Assembly: GCA_038496445.1 (NCBI GenBank)
Contig: JALMLS010000585.1
Location: 248,001 to 312,000 of the forward strand
Direction: 5' to 3'
DNA from: Trichosphaerium sp. ATCC 40318
Taxonomy: Eukaryota; Protista; Tubulinea
DNA length: 64,000 nt
Part shown: positions 4,665-64,000 of the stretch, piece by piece
Numbering within the stretch: the stretch's first letter is position 1
Layout: every line of letters starts with the position of its first letter
The notes under the pieces: model-generated
Databases searched by the model: none
The model's input: the letters and a program-made list of their open reading frames with translations, nothing else
Told to the model about the DNA's origin: nothing
Made by a program: the position numbers and the translations under genes

Positions 4665-6796
4665 ATGAATTTTACCGGTTTTTCTGTAGAACAGGCTCTA
4701 TTATACTATCATGAGCACCACAAAGAAGTTTTCAGTAAAATTACGACAAAACAGCACGAAACACTCGTAAAACAAGTTGAAAGTATCGTAAAGGCTGTAA
4801 ACGAAAACCTCGTAAAACAACTCACCTCAGCGCTTAAAAAACACTTGGATTCTATTCCCAACATTAAAAAGAGGCGTTCGACATCACAGCCAAAGGACTT
4901 TGAGTCACGTAAACGTAAACAAAAAGAGAGGTACGTTTTCTCCACTTTGAAGCTTGTTTTACTTACTTGCTGAACAGTAGCCAATCGATACAACATGAAG
5001 AACTGAATAACATTGTTTATTTTCCTCCAGAAGTCATTTCGAATATTCTACAGCTTACAGATGCCGAGGATAGATTTTCTGTTGCTCAGTCATGTCATCT
5101 CATGGCTGATATTATTCACGGTATTGTTGGATACAAATACGTTTATCTCAAGAGATATCAAGATATTCTAAAGATTCAACAATACAAAGGCGTTATGAAC
5201 AACAGCATTATTCAGTTGGACTCAATGAGAGATAACACAATATTTTCATTACTTGCTGGTTGTCGTAATATCAAAAGATCACCAAGGAGCAAGAGAGTGA
5301 ATGATAGTGATCTCAAATTAATAAGTAGTGTTAAGCAAGTCAGTTCTATTGATATCAGCGACTGTAAACATGTTACAGATGACGGCATAAAGACATTGAA
5401 AGGTGTCCATACGATAAATCTGAGTGAGTGTAAGCAATTAGGAGATGAAGGCATCAAGGCACTAAAAGGTGTTCATACTATTGTCCTTAATCGTTGTGAT
5501 AAAGTGACTGATGAAGGTATCAAAGCATTGGCAGGAGTACATACAATTGAACTTAGTGGTTGTAAGCATATAACAGATGAAGGTATAAAAGCACTTGCTG
5601 GAGTTCACAAAATTTTCCTTAGTCGTTGTAGACTGGTGACAGACGAAGGCATAAAGGCATTGGCAGGGGTTCATACTATTGTTAGTATGCGTGGTACTTC
5701 AGTAACTGGTGAAGGTATCAAAGCACTCACGGGCATACACTCAATTAGTGTCAGAGGCTGTAAGCGAGTAACTGATGAATGTATCAAAGCTCTCAAAGGT
5801 GTTCATACGATTGATCTTAGTTTTTGTGACCAAGTATCTGATGAAGGTGTAAAAGCGCTTGCAGGCGTACACACGATTGATCTTAGTTGTTGTGAACAAG
5901 TATCTGATGAAGGTGTAAAAGCACTTACAGGTGTACACACGATTGATCTTTCAGGGTGCATGCAGGTGACGGATGAAGGCATCAAAACTTTACAAGGAGT
6001 TCATAAAATTACGCTTTGTGGGACTTCTGTGAGAGATGAAGGTATCAAGGCATTGGCAAGCGTACATACAATTGATCTTCGTAATACCCAAATAACAGAT
6101 GAAGCCATAAAAACTCTGGCTGGTGTTCATACAATTAATCTTTGTAACACCTCTGTGACAGATGAAGGCATAAAGGCATTGGCAGGGGTTCATACTATTG
6201 TTAGTATGCGTGGTACTTCAGTAACTGGTGAAGGTATCAAAGCACTCAAGGGCATACACTCAATTAATGTTCACGATTGTAAACAGATAACTGATGAATG
6301 TATCAAAGCTCTCAAAGGTGTTCATACAATTAGTCTTAGCTGTTGTGAACAAGTAACTGATGAAGGTGTTAAAGCGCTTGCAGGTGTACACACGATTGAT
6401 CTTTCAGAGTGCAGACTGGTGACAGATGAAGGTGTAAAAGCACTAAAAGGAGCTCACACAATTGATCTTCATAATTGTACCCATATAACAGATGAAGCCA
6501 TAAAAGCTCTGGCTGGTGTTCATACAATTAATCTTCGTAACACCTCAGTTACAGATGTAGGCATTGAAGCACTGGTTGGTGTGCATACAATAGGCATTTT
6601 GGGTTGTGACAGGGTAACAGATACAGGTGTCAAAGCACTCAAGAGTGTTCACAAAATTAGTATTGGTAGTTACTATGTGACAGATGAAGGTATAGAAGCA
6701 ATAGAAGTTCATACTGTAGAAGATCATTTCGAAACTCTTTCAGATGACTGTGTTGCAAGGCTTGAAGCCTTTTCGGTGAACATCCAGTATTTCTAG
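4665..6796 (+). CDS. F-box/LRR protein, copy A (2 exons; ~21 LRRs of 21-22 aa)
   Basis: Exon 1 is 4665-4930 (basic KKRR..RKRKQK). Intron 4931-4980 runs GTACGT..TAG; the acceptor is supported by the paralog. F-box FPPEVISNIL..VAQSCHLM, then repeats GVHTIxLxx(C)xxVTDEGIKALx. Confidence 0.9.
5636..6410 (+). repeat. Internal block duplication in the LRR array of copy A (offset 519 nt = 8 modules)
   Basis: 5636-5745 and 6155-6264 are nearly identical (GVHTIVSMRGTSVTGEGIKAL.GIHSI). Similarity continues into the following modules. Confidence 0.85.
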
Positions 6797-19981: not shown

Positions 19982-20439
19982 TATTTAGATAAATAAAAAA
20001 ACTTTATTTGCAACATGCCGTGTTAGGTTTAGACTAAGTTCTTGTTTCCTTACAAAAATCCTTATGGATGTGTTACAAAAGCTTGTCTTAAACTGTATTG
20101 CAAGGCTTGAAGCCTTATCAGTATATCTGTGCTTGTACCTTTGAGCGCTCTGAACTTTCATCATTCACTTGACTACAGCTTTGAATGCCACCAGCCAGTG
20201 CTTTTAAGCCTCCATTTGTCTACAATGACTGATAACAATATACTAACTGATTAATTTTCAAATCACCATCGTGAATTATCAGCCACGATTGAGCAACATA
20301 AAATCTATCCTCGGCATCCTTCAAAGTTTAGTGAGTATTGTTAACCTACATACTGTGATGTTGTAAGCAAATTATTTCGCTTTTATTTTCCCGATTTATT
20401 TACCATCAACTTACGCTTTGTGCACAACGAACTATTGGA

Positions 20440-38560: not shown

Positions 38561-39778
38561 ATGGCAACAAACTCTTCAGCCTTAGAACCTAGGCACAAAG
38601 GCACCTACAGTTACCTACAGAGCATTCCTCTTGAATTACTTCTATATATTATGGACAAACACCACGAAGCATACGTTAAGATGCCTATGTTATCAAGAAA
38701 AATAGCTCTAACAAGGTTCAATGATCGACTCGAGAAGCACGGCAAATGGGTGAAAAGAGAGCGTATTATGTTTGCATACCATCACCCAGAGGAACATATT
38801 GTACAAGTACATTACTGGATACATGGTGAACTAGCACAATTTATCAAGTTTCTTTGGGCACGTGTAGAATTTAACACCGAGTCCTCGTGCAGGGTACCAA
38901 CTGAGAAGCTACAGTGTGTAAATTTTGAACAACAAGAAAAAGTACATATCGCGTGGTACAGCACTAGTCCCATACGGAACCTAAGTTTGTCAGACGATAA
39001 TATACTGCAAGGAGAGTTTAGGAGGTGGTACAAGTGTCACTATGTGAAGGGTAAACGTGAAGGAGAATATACCGAATGGTATGAAAACAATCACTTGATG
39101 AAACAATATTTTTACATGAATGGTAAACGACATGGAAAGTGCCAGCAATGGTATGATAACAGTATATTGAAAGTAGACGCTACCTACAAAAGCGGGAACA
39201 AAGATGGAAAGTATAGGAGTTTCCATTCAAATGGTCAAGTTAAAGTGGAGTGCAACTATAAAAAAGGCAATCAACATGGGAAGTACAGAGCGTTTTATGA
39301 GTCAGGAAGTTTAAGGAGTGAACGAAAATATGTCAATGGCAAAATCAAAGGCGCTTATAGAACCTGGTACAGTAATGGTAAGATAAAACTAAAAGCCATC
39401 TATGTCAACGGTAAAAAAGATGGGCTGTTCCAGACATGGTACAGAAATGGAAAAATGCATAAGCAGTGCTATTACAGCAACAATGAACGTCATGGAGAGT
39501 ATAAAGAGTATTACGATAATTGTCAATTAAAACTTGAATGCCAGTATGTCAATGGTACACTCAAAGGAAGATACAAGGAGTGGTCCGTAGAAGGAAGATT
39601 GCGTACAAGTTTCAGGAGTGGAGAACGAGTTTTAAGTCCTACCCAGCACAGACTTGGAATAGTATTTAGGACACTCCGCAATTCTTTTGATGGCTCTTTT
39701 ATCAATATACCCCCATTGTCACAGCACCTCTATCCTACTAGCATTTTTAGAACAAATTCAAATGACTTGCACAAGTAA
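38561..39778 (+). CDS. F-box-like N-terminus + MORN-variant repeat protein, 405 aa, intronless
   Basis: YLQSIPLELLLYIM..RFNDRLEKHGKW, then ~8 repeats of 24 aa (Y.NGK..G.Y..WY.NG.LK). Confidence 0.85.
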   Translation: MATNSSALEPRHKGTYSYLQSIPLELLLYIMDKHHEAYVKMPMLSRKIALTRFNDRLEKHGKWVKRERIMFAYHHPEEHIVQVHYWIHGELAQFIKFLWARVEFNTESSCRVPTEKLQCVNFEQQEKVHIAWYSTSPIRNLSLSDDNILQGEFRRWYKCHYVKGKREGEYTEWYENNHLMKQYFYMNGKRHGKCQQWYDNSILKVDATYKSGNKDGKYRSFHSNGQVKVECNYKKGNQHGKYRAFYESGSLRSERKYVNGKIKGAYRTWYSNGKIKLKAIYVNGKKDGLFQTWYRNGKMHKQCYYSNNERHGEYKEYYDNCQLKLECQYVNGTLKGRYKEWSVEGRLRTSFRSGERVLSPTQHRLGIVFRTLRNSFDGSFINIPPLSQHLYPTSIFRTNSNDLHK

Positions 39779-54146: not shown

Positions 54147-54548
54147 TGCTTCTCCTTGTTTTCGATGTCTTGAATTAAATGCCTTAGCTCTTTTTTTTTT
54201 TTTTCACTGAACACTTTCGGATCTTACAAATAACCACAAAAAGTGATCCATACGCCTTTGGATACAATATCTTTTCATGGCAACACTTTAATGCCTGAAT
54301 CAGTAATTGATCTACAAAACTTCAAGTAAATAGTATGAACTCCTGCCAGCAATAGTAAATCATAGTTGTCAATAGCAAAGCAGGGTGTTATGTAATAAAT
54401 TGTTGCAACGCTAGGTTTTTGGTTTGTTGGAGACACTGAAGCCACTGTGTAGATTGTAATTGTCTTTTTATTTTGCAACAGTTAAACTAATTTATACCTC
54501 TTTCAAAAAGATCTGCAATGATGTTACAAATACTCTAAGCAACAGTCT

Positions 54549-56598
54549 TTACACATTCACTGATAAGGCCTTAAGCCTTACAATACATTCTCTTGAGATG
54601 CTGTTGCCATAGTTTTTTAAGGTATGAAGACCCACAAGTGCTTCTATACCATTATCAGTCACATATCGATTGTTAATAGAAATTGTATGAACACCTTTGA
54701 GCGCTCTGACACCTCCATTAGTCACTTGATTACATCTTTGAATATCAATAGTATGCACGCCAGCCAATGCTTTTAAGCCTCTATCTGTTATTTGTGTACA
54801 AGACTGAAGTTTAATTTTATGTACTCCAGCTAGTGCTTGAATACCGTCATCTGTCACTGAAGTGTGATTGAGGCTAATTGTATGAACTCCAGCCAAAGCT
54901 TTAATTCCGTTATCTGTTACTGAGGTGTTACTAAGGTAAATTGTATGTACACCTTTCAGCGCTTTGATGCCTTCATCTGTCACTGAGGTACCTCCAACGT
55001 AAATTGTATGTACTCCAGCCAATGCTTTGATTCCGTTATCTGTTACTGAGGTGTTACTAAGGTAAATTGTATGTACACCTTTCAGCGCTTTGATGCCTTC
55101 ATCTGTCACTGATGTATTAATAAGAGTAGCAGAATGAACTCCAGCAAGTGCTTTGATACCTACATCTGTAACTTGAACACATCCAAAAAGGAAAATCTTG
55201 TGAACTCCAGCAAGCGCTTTTATACCTTCATCTGTCACTTGATGGCAACCGCCAAGGTTAATACTATAAACACCAGCCAGCGATTTGATACCTTCATCTG
55301 TCACCGAGGTGCCTCCAAGGCGAATAGTATGAACTCCAGCCAACTCTTTGATACCTACATCTGTAATCTGGCTACACCCTGAAAGACTAATTGTATGAAC
55401 ACCTTTGAGTGCTTTGATACCATCATCTGTAATATGTTTACAACCAGTGAGTGTAATTTCATATACCCCTATCAACGCTGAAATGCCTTCATCTGTAATA
55501 TCACAACCATACAGGTTGATCGAATGTATGCCTTTGAGTGCTTTGATACCTTCATCTGTGACTTTGGTTAAACGAAGACTACGAATGGTATGGACACCAG
55601 CCAATGCTTTGATACCTTCATCTGTCACTGAAGTTTCTCGAAGACTAATTGTATGTACACCTTTCAATGCTTTGATACCTTCGTCTCCTACTTTCCGACA
55701 AGTAGAAAGGTCAATATTGCTAACACCTTTAAGTTGTTTGATGCCCTCATCTGTAATTGAGTCGCAATTACTAAGATTAATTGTATGGACACCTTGTAGT
55801 GCTTTGATGCCCTCATCTGTTATTGAGCAGCATCCAGTTAGGTTAATTGTGTGGACACCCTTCAATGTTTTAATGCCTTGATCTGTAACTTGTTGACAAT
55901 GACTGATATCAATGTAGCTAACTTGGTTACTGCTACCAATTAATTTCAAATCAGTATCATTGACTTGCTTGTTCCTTGGTGATCGTTGGAGTTTACGGCA
56001 ACCAGCAAGTAATGAAAATACTGTAAAATTTCTCATATAATTCAACTGAATGATACTGTTGTTCATAACACCTTTGTATTGTTGAATCTTTAGAACATCT
56101 TGATATCTCTTGAGATAAACATATTGGTATCCAACAATATCATGAATAATATCAGCCATAAGATGACATGATTGAGCAACAGAAAATCTATCCTTGGCAT
56201 CTGTAAAGTGTAGAATATTCGAGATAACTTCTGGAGGAAAATAAACAATGTTATTCAGTTCTTCATGTTGGATAGATTGGCTAATATTCACCGAATAAGT
56301 AAAAACAAAGTTTCAACTGGAATTAAACGCACGTCTCTTTTTGTTTGCGTTTATGCAAACCAAAGTCGTTTGGATGTGTTGAACGCTTCTTTTTCATGCT
56401 TGGAATAGAATCCTGTGAGTTTTGTAACAGCGCTGAGGTGAGTTGTTTTACAAGGGTTGCATTTATGGTCTTTACGATACTTGTAACTTGTTTTATGAGT
56501 GTTTCATGTTGTTTTGCCACAATTTTACTAAAAACTTGGTTGTGGTGCTCGCGATAGTATGCTAGAGCCTGTTCTACAGAAAAACAAGAGAAACTCAT
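54549..56598 (-). CDS. F-box/LRR protein, copy B (2 exons; ~20 LRRs)
   Basis: Same exon 1, same intron position (GTGCGT..TAG) and near-identical F-box region as 4665-6796. Confidence 0.9.
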
Positions 56599-57121
56599 GA
56601 TTTATTGTTTCGTAGAACAAATATGATTATAACAGGACTTAACGCTAAGAGTGTTGGATTTAAGTTTGGTTGGAAAGAGGACTAAATTATTACTCAATAT
56701 CAAACTGTCAACACTGTACTTAAACAACTGAAGGTAGTATTAGACTAGAGGATGTAATTGATTAACATTTAACAACATATTGCAATTCCATTGCAAGGAT
56801 TAAGCAAGGTACACTGTACTTACAACACTTTAGATTAAAAATTGTCCTAAGAAATCACTGCTACTAATTATACATTAATAGAGTGATGTCCAGCTTTTGA
56901 AGGAGCGAAAGTATCTATGGAATTTCACTCTTGAAAACTCGCAAAAAAAAAGTAACTGCAGTTTTCATGATTTCTTTTGGTAATAAACAATGTCGATACA
57001 CTTGAAAAGGATATTATTGTAGCAGATTATGTTAAGTAACATTCCACCAAAAATAGCTAGACATCTAAAAGCATTAAGTGTATGTAGTTTGTTTTAAAAA
57101 CCATTACAAGCTAGACGATGT

Positions 57122-59864
57122 CTAATATCCTCCTGCATATCCATCTTTTCTCATCTCAGAAGCAGCGCTGTATGTTCTTAAATAACATTTAATTAGTTCC
57201 ATCGCATTACAAAGAAGAAGCAAGAAGTAGAAGCAAAATAAACAATTTTTTTTTTGAAGTTTTTTACTTACTTTGTATCTGCGTTCCACTGAATTGCTTG
57301 GTATCCGCCATAACCACTTCCTACTGTAGTATCTATAACATGGCCACGGCTTCTCAGTTCAGCTCTAACAGTTTCATTGATGCCTAGGTAGATTCTTAGA
57401 ATTTAACCGTTTTTCAGTTCAAGTCATGTCATCACTTACCGCTCTCCATTCTGACCCTTCCTCCATTTGTCATGAAGAACCCTTCAGGTGTGCTGTCCTA
57501 ATTACCTTTATTAGTTCAATATTAGTATTAATAGGTGTAACTCCGTAGTGCTGCCATCTAGCAAGGTCTCCAGCTGCTTGAACATCCATTCCAAAGTCAA
57601 CCATATTTTGTATTATTTGTACGTGACCCTGTTTTCTTGCATTAGTTTATCCTTTTGATAAGTTCAAAATCATACCATTGGCTGCATATCACCACCCATT
57701 ACGCCAAAACTTAAAAACGGATTACCGTCTTTCATTACAAAGGCAGGAATAATTGTGTGAAATGGGCGTTTTCCTTCAAAAAAGGTTAGAAAAAAAACCC
57801 ATGATACAACGAATATTGTCTTTACCTGGCATGTACTGATTATTAGATCCAGGTTTCATATCATAAAGTTCTCCTCTATCTTGGAATATAAAACCTAATC
57901 CTGGTACTACAACTCCAGAACCCATACTGCAAAGAGCTTTAGCATGACTTTTTTTTTCTCGTAATTTTTTATTGTTTTTTTCGAAAAGGCCATACCCACG
58001 AAAGTTAGATTGAATAAAAGACACCATGTTTCCGTATTGATCGGCTGTAGTCAAGTAAATAGTATCAGAATGACTTATAGCGGGGTTTCCTGGTTCAACA
58101 CTACGCAAAGTTGAAGTCATACTTATCATTTCACCTATTAAATTGTAGTCAGTTTTGTTTAAACACGAAGTTTTTTTTTGGATATTACGTCTCAGTTCGG
58201 CGTATTCTTTCGATACTAACGCTTCTATTGGAATAGAAGCAAACGCAGGATCTAAAATAATACATCAAAAAGTCTTTTAGCTTAGAGTATGGAGTACCAG
58301 AGTAATAATAAGCGCGATCAGCGAAAGCAACTTTTTTAGCTTCGATATTAACATGAAGGTAATCTGACAACTGTTAACCGTAGGTTTTTCTTCCAAAGTA
58401 CACGTGCCTGGAGAGTTATAACCCATTCCTTTTATATCATATCCTTCAAGTAAATTAAGCATTTGAAGTACTGAAGCGCCCTACAAACTTGTTTAGAACC
58501 TATTCTGTTCAAGGGAAAAAAACGTTACTTGGGTGCTTGGATGAAGTTCATAGACATCGTAGCCTCTGTAATTAGTTGATAGTGGATCTTCCCATGTTGA
58601 GGTATGAGTTTCAAAGTCATTCATACGAAGAAAGCATGTATCAGGGTGAGATTTGAAGAAGGCATCCATCTTTGCTGCAATACTTCCTAGATATGGATAT
58701 CAGCAACTACGAGAAAAAAAATTGTTGTCGGCAACCTTTGTAGAATGAGTCACGTCCTTCGGTAGCAATAGTCTCGAGTGTGTTAGCCAAATCAGGATTC
58801 TTGAATATCTGACCATCAGAAGGACCAACTGGTCCAAAAGCATCAACAACAGCTGGAAACCCAGGAATACTGTTTTGATTGCTAGAGAGAGTTAATAATT
58901 CAACTTACGATTGAGAAAACTCAGCAATTTTGTGTCGGTTAATCGTACTTAATAAAATTCCTGATACCACTGCGCCATCCTCCAGAAATAATAGGAGAAG
59001 CGGCAAATCCGTTACGAGCATAATCAATTGCGGGTTGAAGTATTTCCGACATTGGTAATTTTCCGAATTTTCCATGAAGCTCAAACCACCCGTCAACACA
59101 TCCTACCTCATTGTAAGTCTTGCAAGTGTACGTAATATATTCTTATACATACCTGGTACACTTATTGGAAGACATCCATATGGAGGTATGGTAGTTCGTT
59201 GCATGTTTGTGAGCAAGGTTTGCATTTGAGAGAACGACAATCCCTTTGGAGATCTACCACTGCCATTCAAACCGTATAACTTCCTTGTATCATTATGCCA
59301 AACAATAGCCATAACGTCACCGCCTATACCAGATCCGGTAGGCTCCATTAAACCAGTACATGCGTTGGCTCCAATAGCAGCATCGACGGCAGTACCTATT
59401 GAAAAGAGCATCAAAAACCAAGCTTACTTTTTTATCGACTTCGAAACGGTTTGTCATACCTCCTTTTTTAAGTATATCTAGAGCAATTTGAGTACATTGT
59501 GGTACAGAAGTAGCTGCAGCGCCATTGTGTGCGTTTACCTAAAAGCCGTTTGTAAAAGTCACGTGACCACAAAAAAAAAGTACTGAATTATCAAAAAACT
59601 TTTCTGTATTACCTTACTTCTTGTAGACCATGCAGATTGGCTGCTTGGACGATCTCCACCACCTTTAGATAGCCCAATTGGTGCTTGAGCACGCATATTT
59701 ACAACTGAATTTGTTAACAGGTCAAAATAACCTTTAAATGGTCTATAATGTTTACCTTTATGATAAGCGGGCTGTACAATAAATAACGTGAACAAAGATA
59801 CGAATAACGCAAGTACTGTAGCTTCGCATAACGTAAACGTTATCTTGGTACGCGAGCGTTTCAT
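57122..59864 (-). CDS. ggt: Gamma-glutamyltransferase family (Ntn hydrolase) with N-terminal membrane anchor
   Basis: [23 protein letters not shown], nucleophile SD|[38 protein letters not shown], and C-terminal RKDGYAGGY. Confidence 0.92.
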
Positions 59865-60467
59865 TTTTGGTGTATGTTCTCCGTTCCCTGTGGAGTGTCA
59901 AAAACGTTTTTGTCGTGATGATACTTAATAACACTTTACTTAAGTACGCCTTACTACTATTGTTTATCAGTATCATTGTAAGCGTTACATTATCTTTATT
60001 TTTAACCTGCTTTGGATTGTACGAAAGGGTATTTTTGTTAAACTAAGGCACAGTTTTTTCAATTTTTTCTTGTTTTTTTTCTCGTTTTCTTCATCTTTTT
60101 GTTAAACTGTACAAAAACCTTTGCCTAAATAAAACTATTCAGTTAAAAAGACTGCTTAAAATACAGAAGAAAACTTGTTAAACACAAATCTATTAAGAAC
60201 TTGAGAAGATACAACAAGCTTTCCCTAGAAAGTATACCAATTTTGCTTTTATTGGTACAAACCATCGCGTGATTTATCTAGACTACCTTATAGCTTTTTA
60301 CTCTACTAGGTTTGCAGGCAAGTCCATTGCTGAAGATGTCTCATCATAGCAGCACTCACAGGTTAGCAGTAAAAGTACTGGTACAAAAAGAATACAGGAT
60401 TGACAGTGCAGATAATTTCGTAAAGCCATAGACATTTCTAAAGTAAAATCTATGATGTTATTTGTTT

Positions 60468-61808
60468 TTACATGTCCTGTGACCGATATAGCCATATGGA
60501 CTCCGTGTCAGTTGAACTCTTGCCAGGTTGAGTTAGCGTATAATCTTTCTTGTTTTCAGTTGTAGACGAGTAGTATGTTGTAATAACCATATTTTCTAAG
60601 TAAAAAAGTTACGTGCTTGTAACTGGAAATTGTACATGACATTATTAGTTCGTACTTGGTTTGCAGCAACTGAAAATGTTTGAACCATACATAAACAAGA
60701 ACGTATTAAATATTGGGAATAGGATATGTGGTATTGATTCAAGCACTTCAAGAACAAACGGCTAAAAAGGTGAGTTTAAAAAAAGTTAGTTTACATACAG
60801 TGTTCTGGTAATCAATAAGTGCGTAGACATATAACACTCCTGAGAATACATAACATAATAGAAACGCAAGAGGATATCCAATAAGTTTTACAATAAGCGG
60901 TACTAGTAAATCCTTGGCACTGTTTACATTCATAGCTTTCTGGCAAAGAGGTTAATCGTGCAAACAAACCAATAAAGATTGAACGTACTCTGAAGTTCAC
61001 AACAAAAAATAGCTCATATATTGACAATGCGTTGAGTACAGCAACGATAGCAAATGAAATAAAGAACGGGAATACAGTTACAAGTCCAAATAGTCTACAT
61101 CAGTTACCACAACAACTTTATGAACCACGTACAACTTATCTAAGAGGGACTGACCCTTCATGAAGCACCTATTAACAGCTGTTAGTAACCCCTTTGATAT
61201 TACGTCACTTACCCACCCCAAGGCTCTCGACCATAAGTTCTTGTAGCAAAAGGTGCTAGAGCCATGACAAGAGGAAACACGAAAACGATGAATAGTATGT
61301 AGGGTTCGGCAACTCCAACCGTTTTCCTACAAATACACGTGTTAGTTTCAAAAAACGCTAGAAACCACGTGATTTTTGTAGAACTATCGATAACAGCGTA
61401 CTTGTATTTGATACAGAAGAATATGTTTACAGAAATTGCCGTAACAATAAAAAATACAGTCATGTGAGTGTATACAACACAATAAGCAGCCAAAGAACAG
61501 AATGGCCCTAAGTGTGAGTGAAATACAATCAATGTATTCGAAACAAGGTTTCTGCATCAAGTAGTATTGTGTTAACGCTTACTAATTGTTTTTAGGGAGG
61601 ATAGAGCAAATACGATCTCGCTAAGGCACAACATCCAATCTACAATCGATAAATACAATAGTAGACGCGTGGAAAAGTCTGTCATGTCTCTGTAGAAGAA
61701 TAGAATCAAGAACATCCATGTTGCTAATATTAAAGCTAAAAGGCCAACTACCACTGTAGAGAGTAGAAACAATTGTTCTTTGCTTATCTCTATCAGCACC
61801 AATACCAT
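60468..61808 (-). CDS. 7TM receptor, cAR/CRL-like family, copy 2
   Basis: FSTRLLLYLSIVD, PFCSLAAY, YGREPWGC, KLIGYPLAF, NTFLFMYG; tail SSTDTESIW. Intron positions are shared with copy 1. Confidence 0.8.
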
Positions 61809-62024
61809 CGTAATCGAGCTCCAAAAATATTCAGCTTAATTTGTACGAGTTTTCAAGTGAAATTCTGGAAATACTTTCGCTCCTTTGTAAAGCTACTCAC
61901 TATATTAATTTTGTGTTAATACTATTTGTAGTAGCGATTATATTGGGACAATTTTTAATCTAAAAGCATTGTGTTTTGATACAGTGCACTTTGCTTAATC
62001 GTCGCACTAAACATTCATCTGCTT

Positions 62025-62757
62025 AAAGGTGTTCATCATCGACCTACTCTGACTAGAGTGACTGATGAATGCTTAAAAGCTTTGGGGGTGTTCACACTAT
62101 TATACTGAGGTGCACAAAAATAACAGATGATGGCATTCATGCGCTCAAACGTGTTCACACAATTGGCCTTTCAAATACAAGTGTAACAGGTGACTGTTTC
62201 TCTTCTTTGGCTTGTCCACACTATTGCTATTTCGAGTTGCCCTATTGCTACTGGTGTACAGAACTCAAAGGTGTTCATTCAATCTGCTTAGCTGAAAAAA
62301 CCATCACAAACAAGGATCTATGCGCTCTTGCTGGTGTACATACCATTCACCTTACTGGCACATCAGTGACAGATGAAGGTATCAAATCGCTGGCTGGTGT
62401 TTATAGTATTAACCTTGGCGTTGCCATCAAGTGACAGATGAAGGTATAAAAGCGCTTGCTGGAGTTCATTCTGCTACTCTTATTAATACATCAGTGACAG
62501 ATGAAGGCATCAAAGCGCTTAAAGGTGTACATTGGATTAACCTCAGTGGTTGTACACAGATAACAGATTATGGCATCAAAGCATTAAAAGGAGTACAGGC
62601 AATTACCCTCAGTAACACCAGTAAAAGATGAAGGCATTAAAGCGTTGAAAGGAGTTCATACAATTATCCTCAATCACACTTCAGTGACAGATGACGGTAT
62701 TCAAGCACTAGCTGGAGTACACCAACAAACCATAAAGCTAGCATTGCAACAATTATA
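62025..62757 (+). pseudogene. Start-less, frameshifted array of ~11 LRR modules related to F-box/LRR copy B
   Basis: No F-box or exon 1; several indels. Tracts 62366-62468, 62458-62519 and 62668-62721 match the reverse complement of 55201-55304, 55084-55145 and 54820-54873. Confidence 0.85.
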
Positions 62758-62784: not shown

Positions 62785-64000
62785 CTAGTGCCATATTGAA
62801 TCTGTGTCAGTAGAACTTTTTACGTATGGTACAGAAGGATTTTCTTCCCTCCAGTTTTCAGTCGTAGACGAGTAGTATGTCGTAATAACCGTAGTTTCTA
62901 AGGTGTAAAAGTTACATGCTTGTAGTTAACAATTTAGGTTTTTGCTACATGATATTATTGTATTCGTACTTGGTTTGCAGCAACTGAAAACGTTTGAACC
63001 ATACATAAACAAGAACGTATTAAATATTGGGAATAGGATATGTGGTATTGATTCAAGCACTTCAAGAACAAACGGCTAAAAAAGTGTATGAGTTTCGAGC
63101 GTGTTGACGTTTTCTTTACATACAGTGTTTTCGTAATCAAGAAGCACGTAGACATATAACACTCCTGAGAATACATAGCATAATAGAAACGCAAGAGGGT
63201 ATCCAATAAGCTTTACAATAAGTGGTGCTAATAAATCCTTGGCACTGTTTACATTCATAGCTTTCTGGCAAAGAGGTTAATCGTGTAAACAAACCAATAA
63301 AGATTGAACGTACTCTGAAGTTCACAACGAAAAATAGCTCGTATATTGACAATGCGTTGAGTACAGCAATAAATATGAATGAAATAAAGAACGGGAATAC
63401 AGACACAAGCCCAAATAATCTATCGAGTTAATGACAGCGAGATATTGGTACAAACGTACAACTTATCTAAAAGAGACTGACCCTTCATGAAGCACCTATT
63501 AACAGCTGTTACTAACACCTTTGATATTACGTCACTTACCCACCCCAAGGCTCTCGACCATAAGTTCTTGTAGCAAAAGGTGCCAGAGCCATGACAAGAG
63601 GAAACACAAAAATGAAGAATAGTATAAAAGGCTCCGCAACCACAACTGTTTTCCTGTGCAAAACAGTCAACTTAAAAAACACGTGTTATATTTTAGCATG
63701 TGCGAGCACGTGATTTTAATACAATAAAAAAAATGTACACGTGATTTTACATGTAAAAGGTAAAAAAAATAAAAAAATGGATCACGTGATTTATGTACAC
63801 CGATAGATAAGCGTACTTGTACTTGATGCAGAAGAATATATTTACAGATATTGCTGTGACTACGAAAAATACTGTCAAGTGAGCACAAACAGCGAAATAA
63901 GCTGCCAAGGAGCAAAACGGTTCTAAAGTGTCTTTAGCAAAACTTTCAGGCATTCAAGCAAGTATAAGTCTAAGGTTGCTTGGTTTTGTGCGTACTAATA
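62785..64000 (-). CDS. 7TM receptor, cAR/CRL-like family, copy 3 (recent tandem duplicate of copy 2; 5' end outside window)
   Basis: High nucleotide identity to 60.5-61.5 kb, including some introns; tail SSTDTDSIWH*. Confidence 0.8.

Follow-up and report, generated by a model that had tools for sequence, protein, structure and literature searches.

The question raised by this locus is whether an LRR array that has lost its start is a store of modules kept for the diversification of an intact gene, or simply a broken gene copy. The window, i.e. the whole stretch of 64,000 nucleotides analysed here, is intron-rich eukaryotic DNA of about 36% GC from Trichosphaerium sp. ATCC 40318. Array C (62028-62721, plus strand) lies inverted relative to gene B and has neither a start nor an F-box. 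A first-pass annotation saw in it a possible donor reservoir resembling the VLR cassettes of agnathans or the VSG pseudogenes of trypanosomes, and named a decaying duplicate as the alternative. Here, we argue that C is probably a decaying inverted paralog of a B-like F-box/LRR locus, which was recently refreshed by conversion from B; the decaying duplicate fits best only once this conversion is added.

Gene B (54549-56598, minus strand) consists of exon 1 (56598-56333, about 89 codons) and an exon 2 that comprises an F-box-like segment, a spacer and 20 LRR modules. A predicted intron of 52 nt (56332-56281, phase 2) would restore the frame between them, and the same exon layout recurs in complete transcripts of relatives. 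Gene A (4665-6796, plus strand) is an intact paralog and is used as outgroup. Both are complete genes with open frames and 20-21 modules each, and both carry internal duplications, one of 126 nt in B (108/111 nt identical) and those of A with 113/121 nt identical in one case. B was searched and folded from exon 2, and exon 1 was scanned alone; the spliced exons were not joined. The best solved relatives in the profile search are FBXL2 (E = 1.5e-18) and FBXL17 (E = 7e-18), and FBXL2 is also the top solved match when the predicted structure is compared by fold. These matches rest on the LRR part, which is modelled as a solenoid with a pLDDT of about 90, while the F-box-like segment reaches 40-50. 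What B shares with FBXL-type proteins is this solenoid; its F-box-like segment (E = 3e-4) scores 21 bits and thus stays below the Pfam cut-off of 24.3, and C has no F-box at all. The earlier designation of B as an intact F-box-LRR gene is plausible from these matches.

The modules are LRRs of 63/66 nt with a constant scaffold and few highly variable positions, which are located within and after the predicted beta strand. Their pairwise identity has a mean of 0.64 and a 95th percentile of 0.75. The closest relatives of B are marine-protist transcriptome proteins, one of them labelled MMETSP0405 Trichosphaerium, and the closest transcript to the genes of the window shows about 78% DNA identity. 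Protein searches yielded a few transcriptome proteins but not one gene model from this genome, and a related-locus search of metagenome and viral contigs returned no family member.

Array C holds 11 modules (62028-62713). The old modules C1-C5 (62028-62332, plus strand) reach 58-75% identity to the nearest known module, with no match above 70% in A or B, and three of them have frame-breaking lengths. The following part (62333-62532, plus strand) is made up of C6, C7, C8 and the first 9 nt of B14, where C7 equals B11 with a 1-nt deletion and C8 equals B13. C6 shows 86% overall identity to B10 and its second half is identical, so the B-like run begins half a module earlier in kind. Within module 11 (62366-62468 vs 55201-55304), an exact block of 55 nt (62366-62420 = 55304-55250) and one of 49 nt (62420-62468 = 55249-55201) together leave a single 1-nt deletion, which falls in a GG pair. 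The clean skip of module 12 falls within the LAGVH linker, where the adjoining blocks overlap by 14 nt (62455-62468), and an exact block of 65 nt (62455-62519 = 55148-55084) leads through module 13. C9 and C10 (62524-62650, plus strand; a 2-nt deletion in C10) have their best matches in A and B at 75-77%. C rejoins B at module 17 with 54 identical nt (62668-62721 = 54873-54820). Over the full modules, the identities are 65/66 for C7/B11, 62/63 for C8/B13 and 62/63 for C11/B17; across B modules 10b-11, 13 and 17, 236/238 nt match. The coordinates of the first-pass annotation are all confirmed, and so are its modules that occur in neither gene.

The uniqueness of C9 and C10 is no argument for cassettes, since "private" modules are normal in this family: the A and B modules show a mean identity of 0.75 (0.67-0.81) to their nearest module in another gene, which is level with C9 and C10. 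Moreover, B modules 14-16, which stand opposite to them, result from B's own 126-nt duplication, and part of the contrast between C and B is thus a recent change of B. The reading frame of C is more damaged than the single frame-breaking indel of the earlier annotation, as five of the 11 modules (C1, C3, C4, C7 and C10) have frame-breaking lengths; in addition, C3 deviates from the module scaffold at five positions. A frame of 121 codons (62069-62434) is kept open via two compensating shifts. The modules of C contain no in-frame stop in their own frames, where 0.5-1.8 would be expected (probability of none 0.17-0.64), a weak indication at most.

Similarity to B extends beyond the LRR modules. 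Upstream of C, a 167-nt homolog (61840-62006, plus strand) of B's upstream region (56947-56792), overlooked in the first-pass annotation, is identical in 130/150 ungapped columns (87%), with many indels. Its counterpart at B is a non-coding element of about 160 nt (56792-56947), 195-350 nt upstream of B's start, which is kept before C and absent from A; it is a candidate promoter piece that could allow transcription of C. Downstream, 33 nt (62722-62754, plus strand) match 54430-54398 behind B at 30/33 positions, with a chance expectation of 0.00 in 100 shuffles. This match had been described as a jump to B's 3' flank; the match itself stands, but the piece actually lies inside an LRR relic behind B's stop (relic E, 54281-54470, minus strand), an in-frame remnant of a spacer and a first LRR. 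Relic E has an open frame of about 64 codons that resembles another family member over its spacer and first LRRs.

The five B-homologous blocks of C (upstream, B10-11, B13, B17 and downstream) follow the order of B, flanks included; by simple arithmetic, a random order of five blocks would do so in 1/120 of cases. Upstream, module and downstream pieces in B's order thus argue for C as a copy of a whole locus. Judged from its sequence, C is an inverted B-like locus shortened by two large out-of-register deletions. The upstream piece is joined to the LRR array out of register, and C lacks everything that lies between them in B, from exon 1 and the intron to F-box and spacer. The 3' joint is blunt and likewise out of register, with 0 shared bases, and skips 389 nt of B, i.e. 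modules 18-20, C-cap, stop and 3' region. C thereby has the marks of an unprocessed duplicated pseudogene: non-coding flank homology to the parent, a lost start and frame-breaking lesions.

Start-less LRR debris is common. In addition to relic E, the window contains relic D (20137-20331, minus strand), in which an F-box scrap, a module-1 scrap and module-18/19 scraps follow each other in B's order; here, many deletions have reduced about 1.5 kb of gene to about 200 nt. The 3' region of a transcript of an unrelated Memo gene (L004, 920-1337) likewise contains, behind the stop codon, a decaying LRR array of this type that has no start, and thus an orphan array that is transcribed. C itself is bracketed by a direct duplication (60491-61515 and 62790-63931, minus strand) of an unrelated, intron-containing gene, about 91% identical and higher in the exons. 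The duplicated gene probably encodes a membrane protein and has no Pfam match. Between B and C, an intron-rich gene (about 57300-59900, minus strand) looks gamma-glutamyltransferase-like by eye.

The similarity of C to B falls into two age classes. Two patches stand out as putative conversion tracts, tract 1 (62366-62532, plus strand, about 167 nt) being a nearly B-identical patch and tract 2 (62651-62721, plus strand, about 71 nt) comprising B17 (62/63) and 8 nt of B18. The tracts are identical to B in 236/238 nt and the flanks in 160/183 nt (Fisher p = 2.4e-7), and 99% against 87% identity points to recent gene conversion. Because the tracts were selected post hoc, the p-values are inflated; even so, the module background (mean 0.64, 95th percentile 0.75) lies far below the identity of the tracts. 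Third codon positions within the tracts are identical at 75/76 sites (p = 4e-4 at the flank rate), so purifying selection alone is insufficient to explain the tracts. The ages of the two tracts are compatible (p = 0.5), and the 33 nt adjoining tract 2 are older (p = 0.003). The whole-module swap by recombination or conversion proposed in the first-pass annotation is thus borne out: to judge by the tracts, in-register exchange between C and B is real and recent. Conversion is the likely mechanism, and one discontinuous conversion between inverted neighbours would account for both tracts. A simple recent duplication of B does not account for C, given that divergence is ten times higher in the flanks than in the tracts.

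For the direction of copying, gene A provides an outgroup in one case. The junction A4|A5 (5573-5620) matches B11|B12 (55235-55188) in 46/48 nt, which is the top value of 380 A-B junction pairs (mean 33.7, sd 3.1). As this junction is common to A and B, B's order is taken to be the older one and the skip of module 12 to be a loss in C. Most likely, module 12 originally followed module 11 and was lost in C at the 14-nt overlap. As A has the junction too, B is unlikely to have gained module 12. The polarisation holds for this one rearrangement only, and the match between the A and B junctions could itself reflect an exchange between A and B. A second junction, A15|A16 (6290-6337), matches B8|B9 (55430-55383) in 44/48 nt; the shared junctions are out of positional order, which suggests that modules were reordered between or within live genes. 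The frameshift in C7 and the 389-nt deletion at the 3' end would be derived in C, unless they are sequence errors. Modules 13 and 17 are without an outgroup. Overall, copying most likely ran from B to C.

A source for the C-specific modules was sought among known relatives. In the small sets at hand (A, B, six related transcripts and 305 retrieved proteins) they are absent, and a degenerate pattern for module C9 hit nothing in the metagenome collection. C3-C6 share a GDxFS motif with the P0009-type subfamily, with an alignment-dependent protein identity of 36-43%. At the DNA level, a possible P0009-type origin of C3-C6 gained no support, with no blastn hit to C and a longest exact match of 14 nt.

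The colinearity with B, the two age classes, the derived skip and the frameshifts are borne out by nucleotide comparison, and the following history would join them. A whole B-like F-box/LRR locus would have been duplicated and inverted to give C. C would then have lost start, F-box and C-terminal cap via the two large out-of-register deletions, while frameshifts accumulated. As C lies 7 kb from B, inverted and with a shared repeat scaffold, ectopic gene conversion or repair synthesis may have made the two patches (about 167 and 71 nt) identical to B, perhaps in one discontinuous event. Module 12 would have been dropped in C by slippage at the 14-nt overlap. As a pseudogene, C is presumably not translated into a useful protein.

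An alternative is a passive two-way reservoir, where C is likewise a decayed paralog but conversion runs both ways over evolutionary time without dedicated machinery, and modules of C sometimes enter B or other intact genes and increase their variety, a view put forward for the entire pool of NWD repeats in Podospora. In three modules, the variable patches are covered by the recent conversion between C and B, with the variable positions lying in and after the predicted beta strand as described, and copying could have run either way for B13 and B17, B13 being atypical as the only one of 38 modules with A at the conserved Ile position. On the other hand, the events that can be polarised are losses in C, and none of the sets searched above, small as they are, contains a C-specific module, be it A, B, the six transcripts, the 305 proteins or the metagenome scan. 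We therefore consider two-way traffic unlikely. Its extension to the whole genome is doubtful: pseudogene arrays like C would keep exchanging with intact F-box/LRR genes and supply binding-surface modules for an intracellular, ubiquitin-linked repertoire, possibly directed against giant viruses that share the repeat type.

We further consider that amplification chimeras, long-read error or mis-polishing could have produced the near-identity of the tracts, the skip of module 12 or the 1-nt deletion. The published Trichosphaerium genome, from which the window presumably stems, was obtained from REPLI-g amplified DNA, and its assembly relied on Canu, Pilon (three rounds) and Redundans (PMC10521059). 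In MDA, inversions with deletions account for more than 85% of the chimeras, and overlaps of 2-21 nt prime most of them (PMC1855051). The 1-nt deletion falls in a GG pair. However, a chimera copies its template exactly, whereas C has diverged flanks, seven modules or half-modules that are absent from B and two substitutions within the tracts. Two in-register entries into and exits from B would also need four chimeric joints. An artefactual origin of these features has thus only a slim chance; C as a whole is not chimeric, and single features such as the GG-to-G deletion and the skip could be errors.

Last, C could be a silent library in a programmed, VLR- or VSG-like system with high and perhaps inducible copying within a lineage. 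The modular 63/66-nt LRRs with their constant scaffold and few highly variable positions, together with the in-register switches, count in favour of this reading. Two assemblies of one transcriptome (L005) contain records of one protein cluster, P0002 and P0121, from a related gene, which differ by exactly two whole modules (43 aa) and two residues. This gap may as well represent an allele, a close paralog or the repeat collapse that is expected in short-read assembly. The switches at the linker, to which the first-pass annotation had drawn attention, are indeed located there; they carry little information, as unlike modules share little beyond the linker. It makes up 55-75% of a module, four switches there have a probability of 0.10-0.31 by chance, and the duplications inside the intact genes A and B have the same bounds, so that linker-located switches were discarded as evidence for a programme. 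A VLR-type system would start from an incomplete germline gene that has a non-coding intervening sequence instead of the LRRs, while A and B are complete, and would draw on many donor cassettes devoid of gene flanks, while in the 64-kb window C keeps both flanks of a normal B-like locus and D and E are deletion relics. Multiple distinct family members were recovered as complete transcripts, which speaks against a single expression site. As C is a colinear, deleted B-like locus with frameshifts in 5/11 modules, tracts already drifted by three changes and the losses on its own side, a donor library of this kind is highly improbable.

The exchange at C can be compared with several known systems. 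In the NWD/HNWD genes of Podospora anserina (het-d, het-e and NWDp1-3), tandem units are exchanged within and between loci and pseudogenes are refreshed, as in C. Repeats of the Podospora pseudogenes are fresher than the rest of their locus, and the authors proposed that they were replaced from active loci (PMC1805685; PMC13449251). One of these pseudogenes has no start codon and is tied to an inversion, and, like here, few surface positions vary per unit. In the window, too, diverged loci including a pseudogene have near-identical repeat units in common, and units are exchanged or duplicated inside the intact genes, as the internal duplications of A and B demonstrate. The systems differ in that the repeats of the NWD proteins are of the WD40 type and belong to a NACHT receptor that has been demonstrated to act in allorecognition. 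Furthermore, all NWD repeats are highly alike, in contrast to modules of about 64% mean identity with patchy exchange and hence no family-wide concerted evolution.

LRR exon shuffling in the ROCO genes of Ectocarpus (PMC3341825) shows a fast LRR turnover with many pseudogenes and recombination within and between genes, and non-coding LRR units were proposed there as a reservoir. Likewise, the LRR genes of Tetrahymena with their 90-bp exons (PMC6564038) recombine modules among genes and pseudogenes. In both organisms each LRR is an exon, while here a single exon holds the array together with an F-box-like segment. Agnathan VLRs (PMC12264053) share with C and B the LRR modules, silent LRR sequence near a gene and conversion-like copying at short homologies. 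In these receptors, however, an incomplete germline gene is completed somatically with sequence from many donor cassettes, a process that depends on cytidine deaminases. Since B is complete, the cassette reading is weakened; C is one deleted paralog, and the readable flow goes into it. The VSG archive of Trypanosoma brucei (PMC3708902) has in common with C broken copies that exchange sequence with an intact relative; VSG mosaics, however, arise in the course of infection, when an expressed copy takes up sequence from hundreds of silent genes. By analogy, C probably works like the pseudogenes of Podospora, brown algae and ciliates, but it belongs to another family and is without family-wide homogenisation.

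The repeat type of B also occurs in F-box/GVHTI-repeat proteins of giant-virus-like contigs. Short F-box/LRR genes of this type are found on two such contigs of 354 kb and 102 kb (L008 and L009), which also encode mRNA capping enzyme, NAD ligase, Erv1 and ubiquitin. Among the virus-like genes of the Trichosphaerium genome, F-box and MORN are the commonest domains (PMC10521059). An intronless gene for a MORN_2 repeat protein of 405 aa (38561-39778, plus strand) represents the other virus-shared repeat family of this genome in the window.

In our best reading, the exchange between gene copies at C and B is of the ordinary kind known from fungal recognition genes, and a lamprey-style donor library is not shown. 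On this reading, the locus is a clear small example of turnover in a fast-changing repeat-receptor family, in which a whole locus is duplicated, decays and undergoes patchy conversion with its inverted neighbour. Similar patterns are on record for fungi, brown algae and ciliates, and the locus contributes one from the Amoebozoa; it also calls for caution, as mosaic pseudogenes by themselves are not donor cassettes. Should modules be shown to pass from pseudogenes to live genes, a free-living amoeba would have a way to diversify its receptors, and ideas of a protist "immune repertoire" would become testable.
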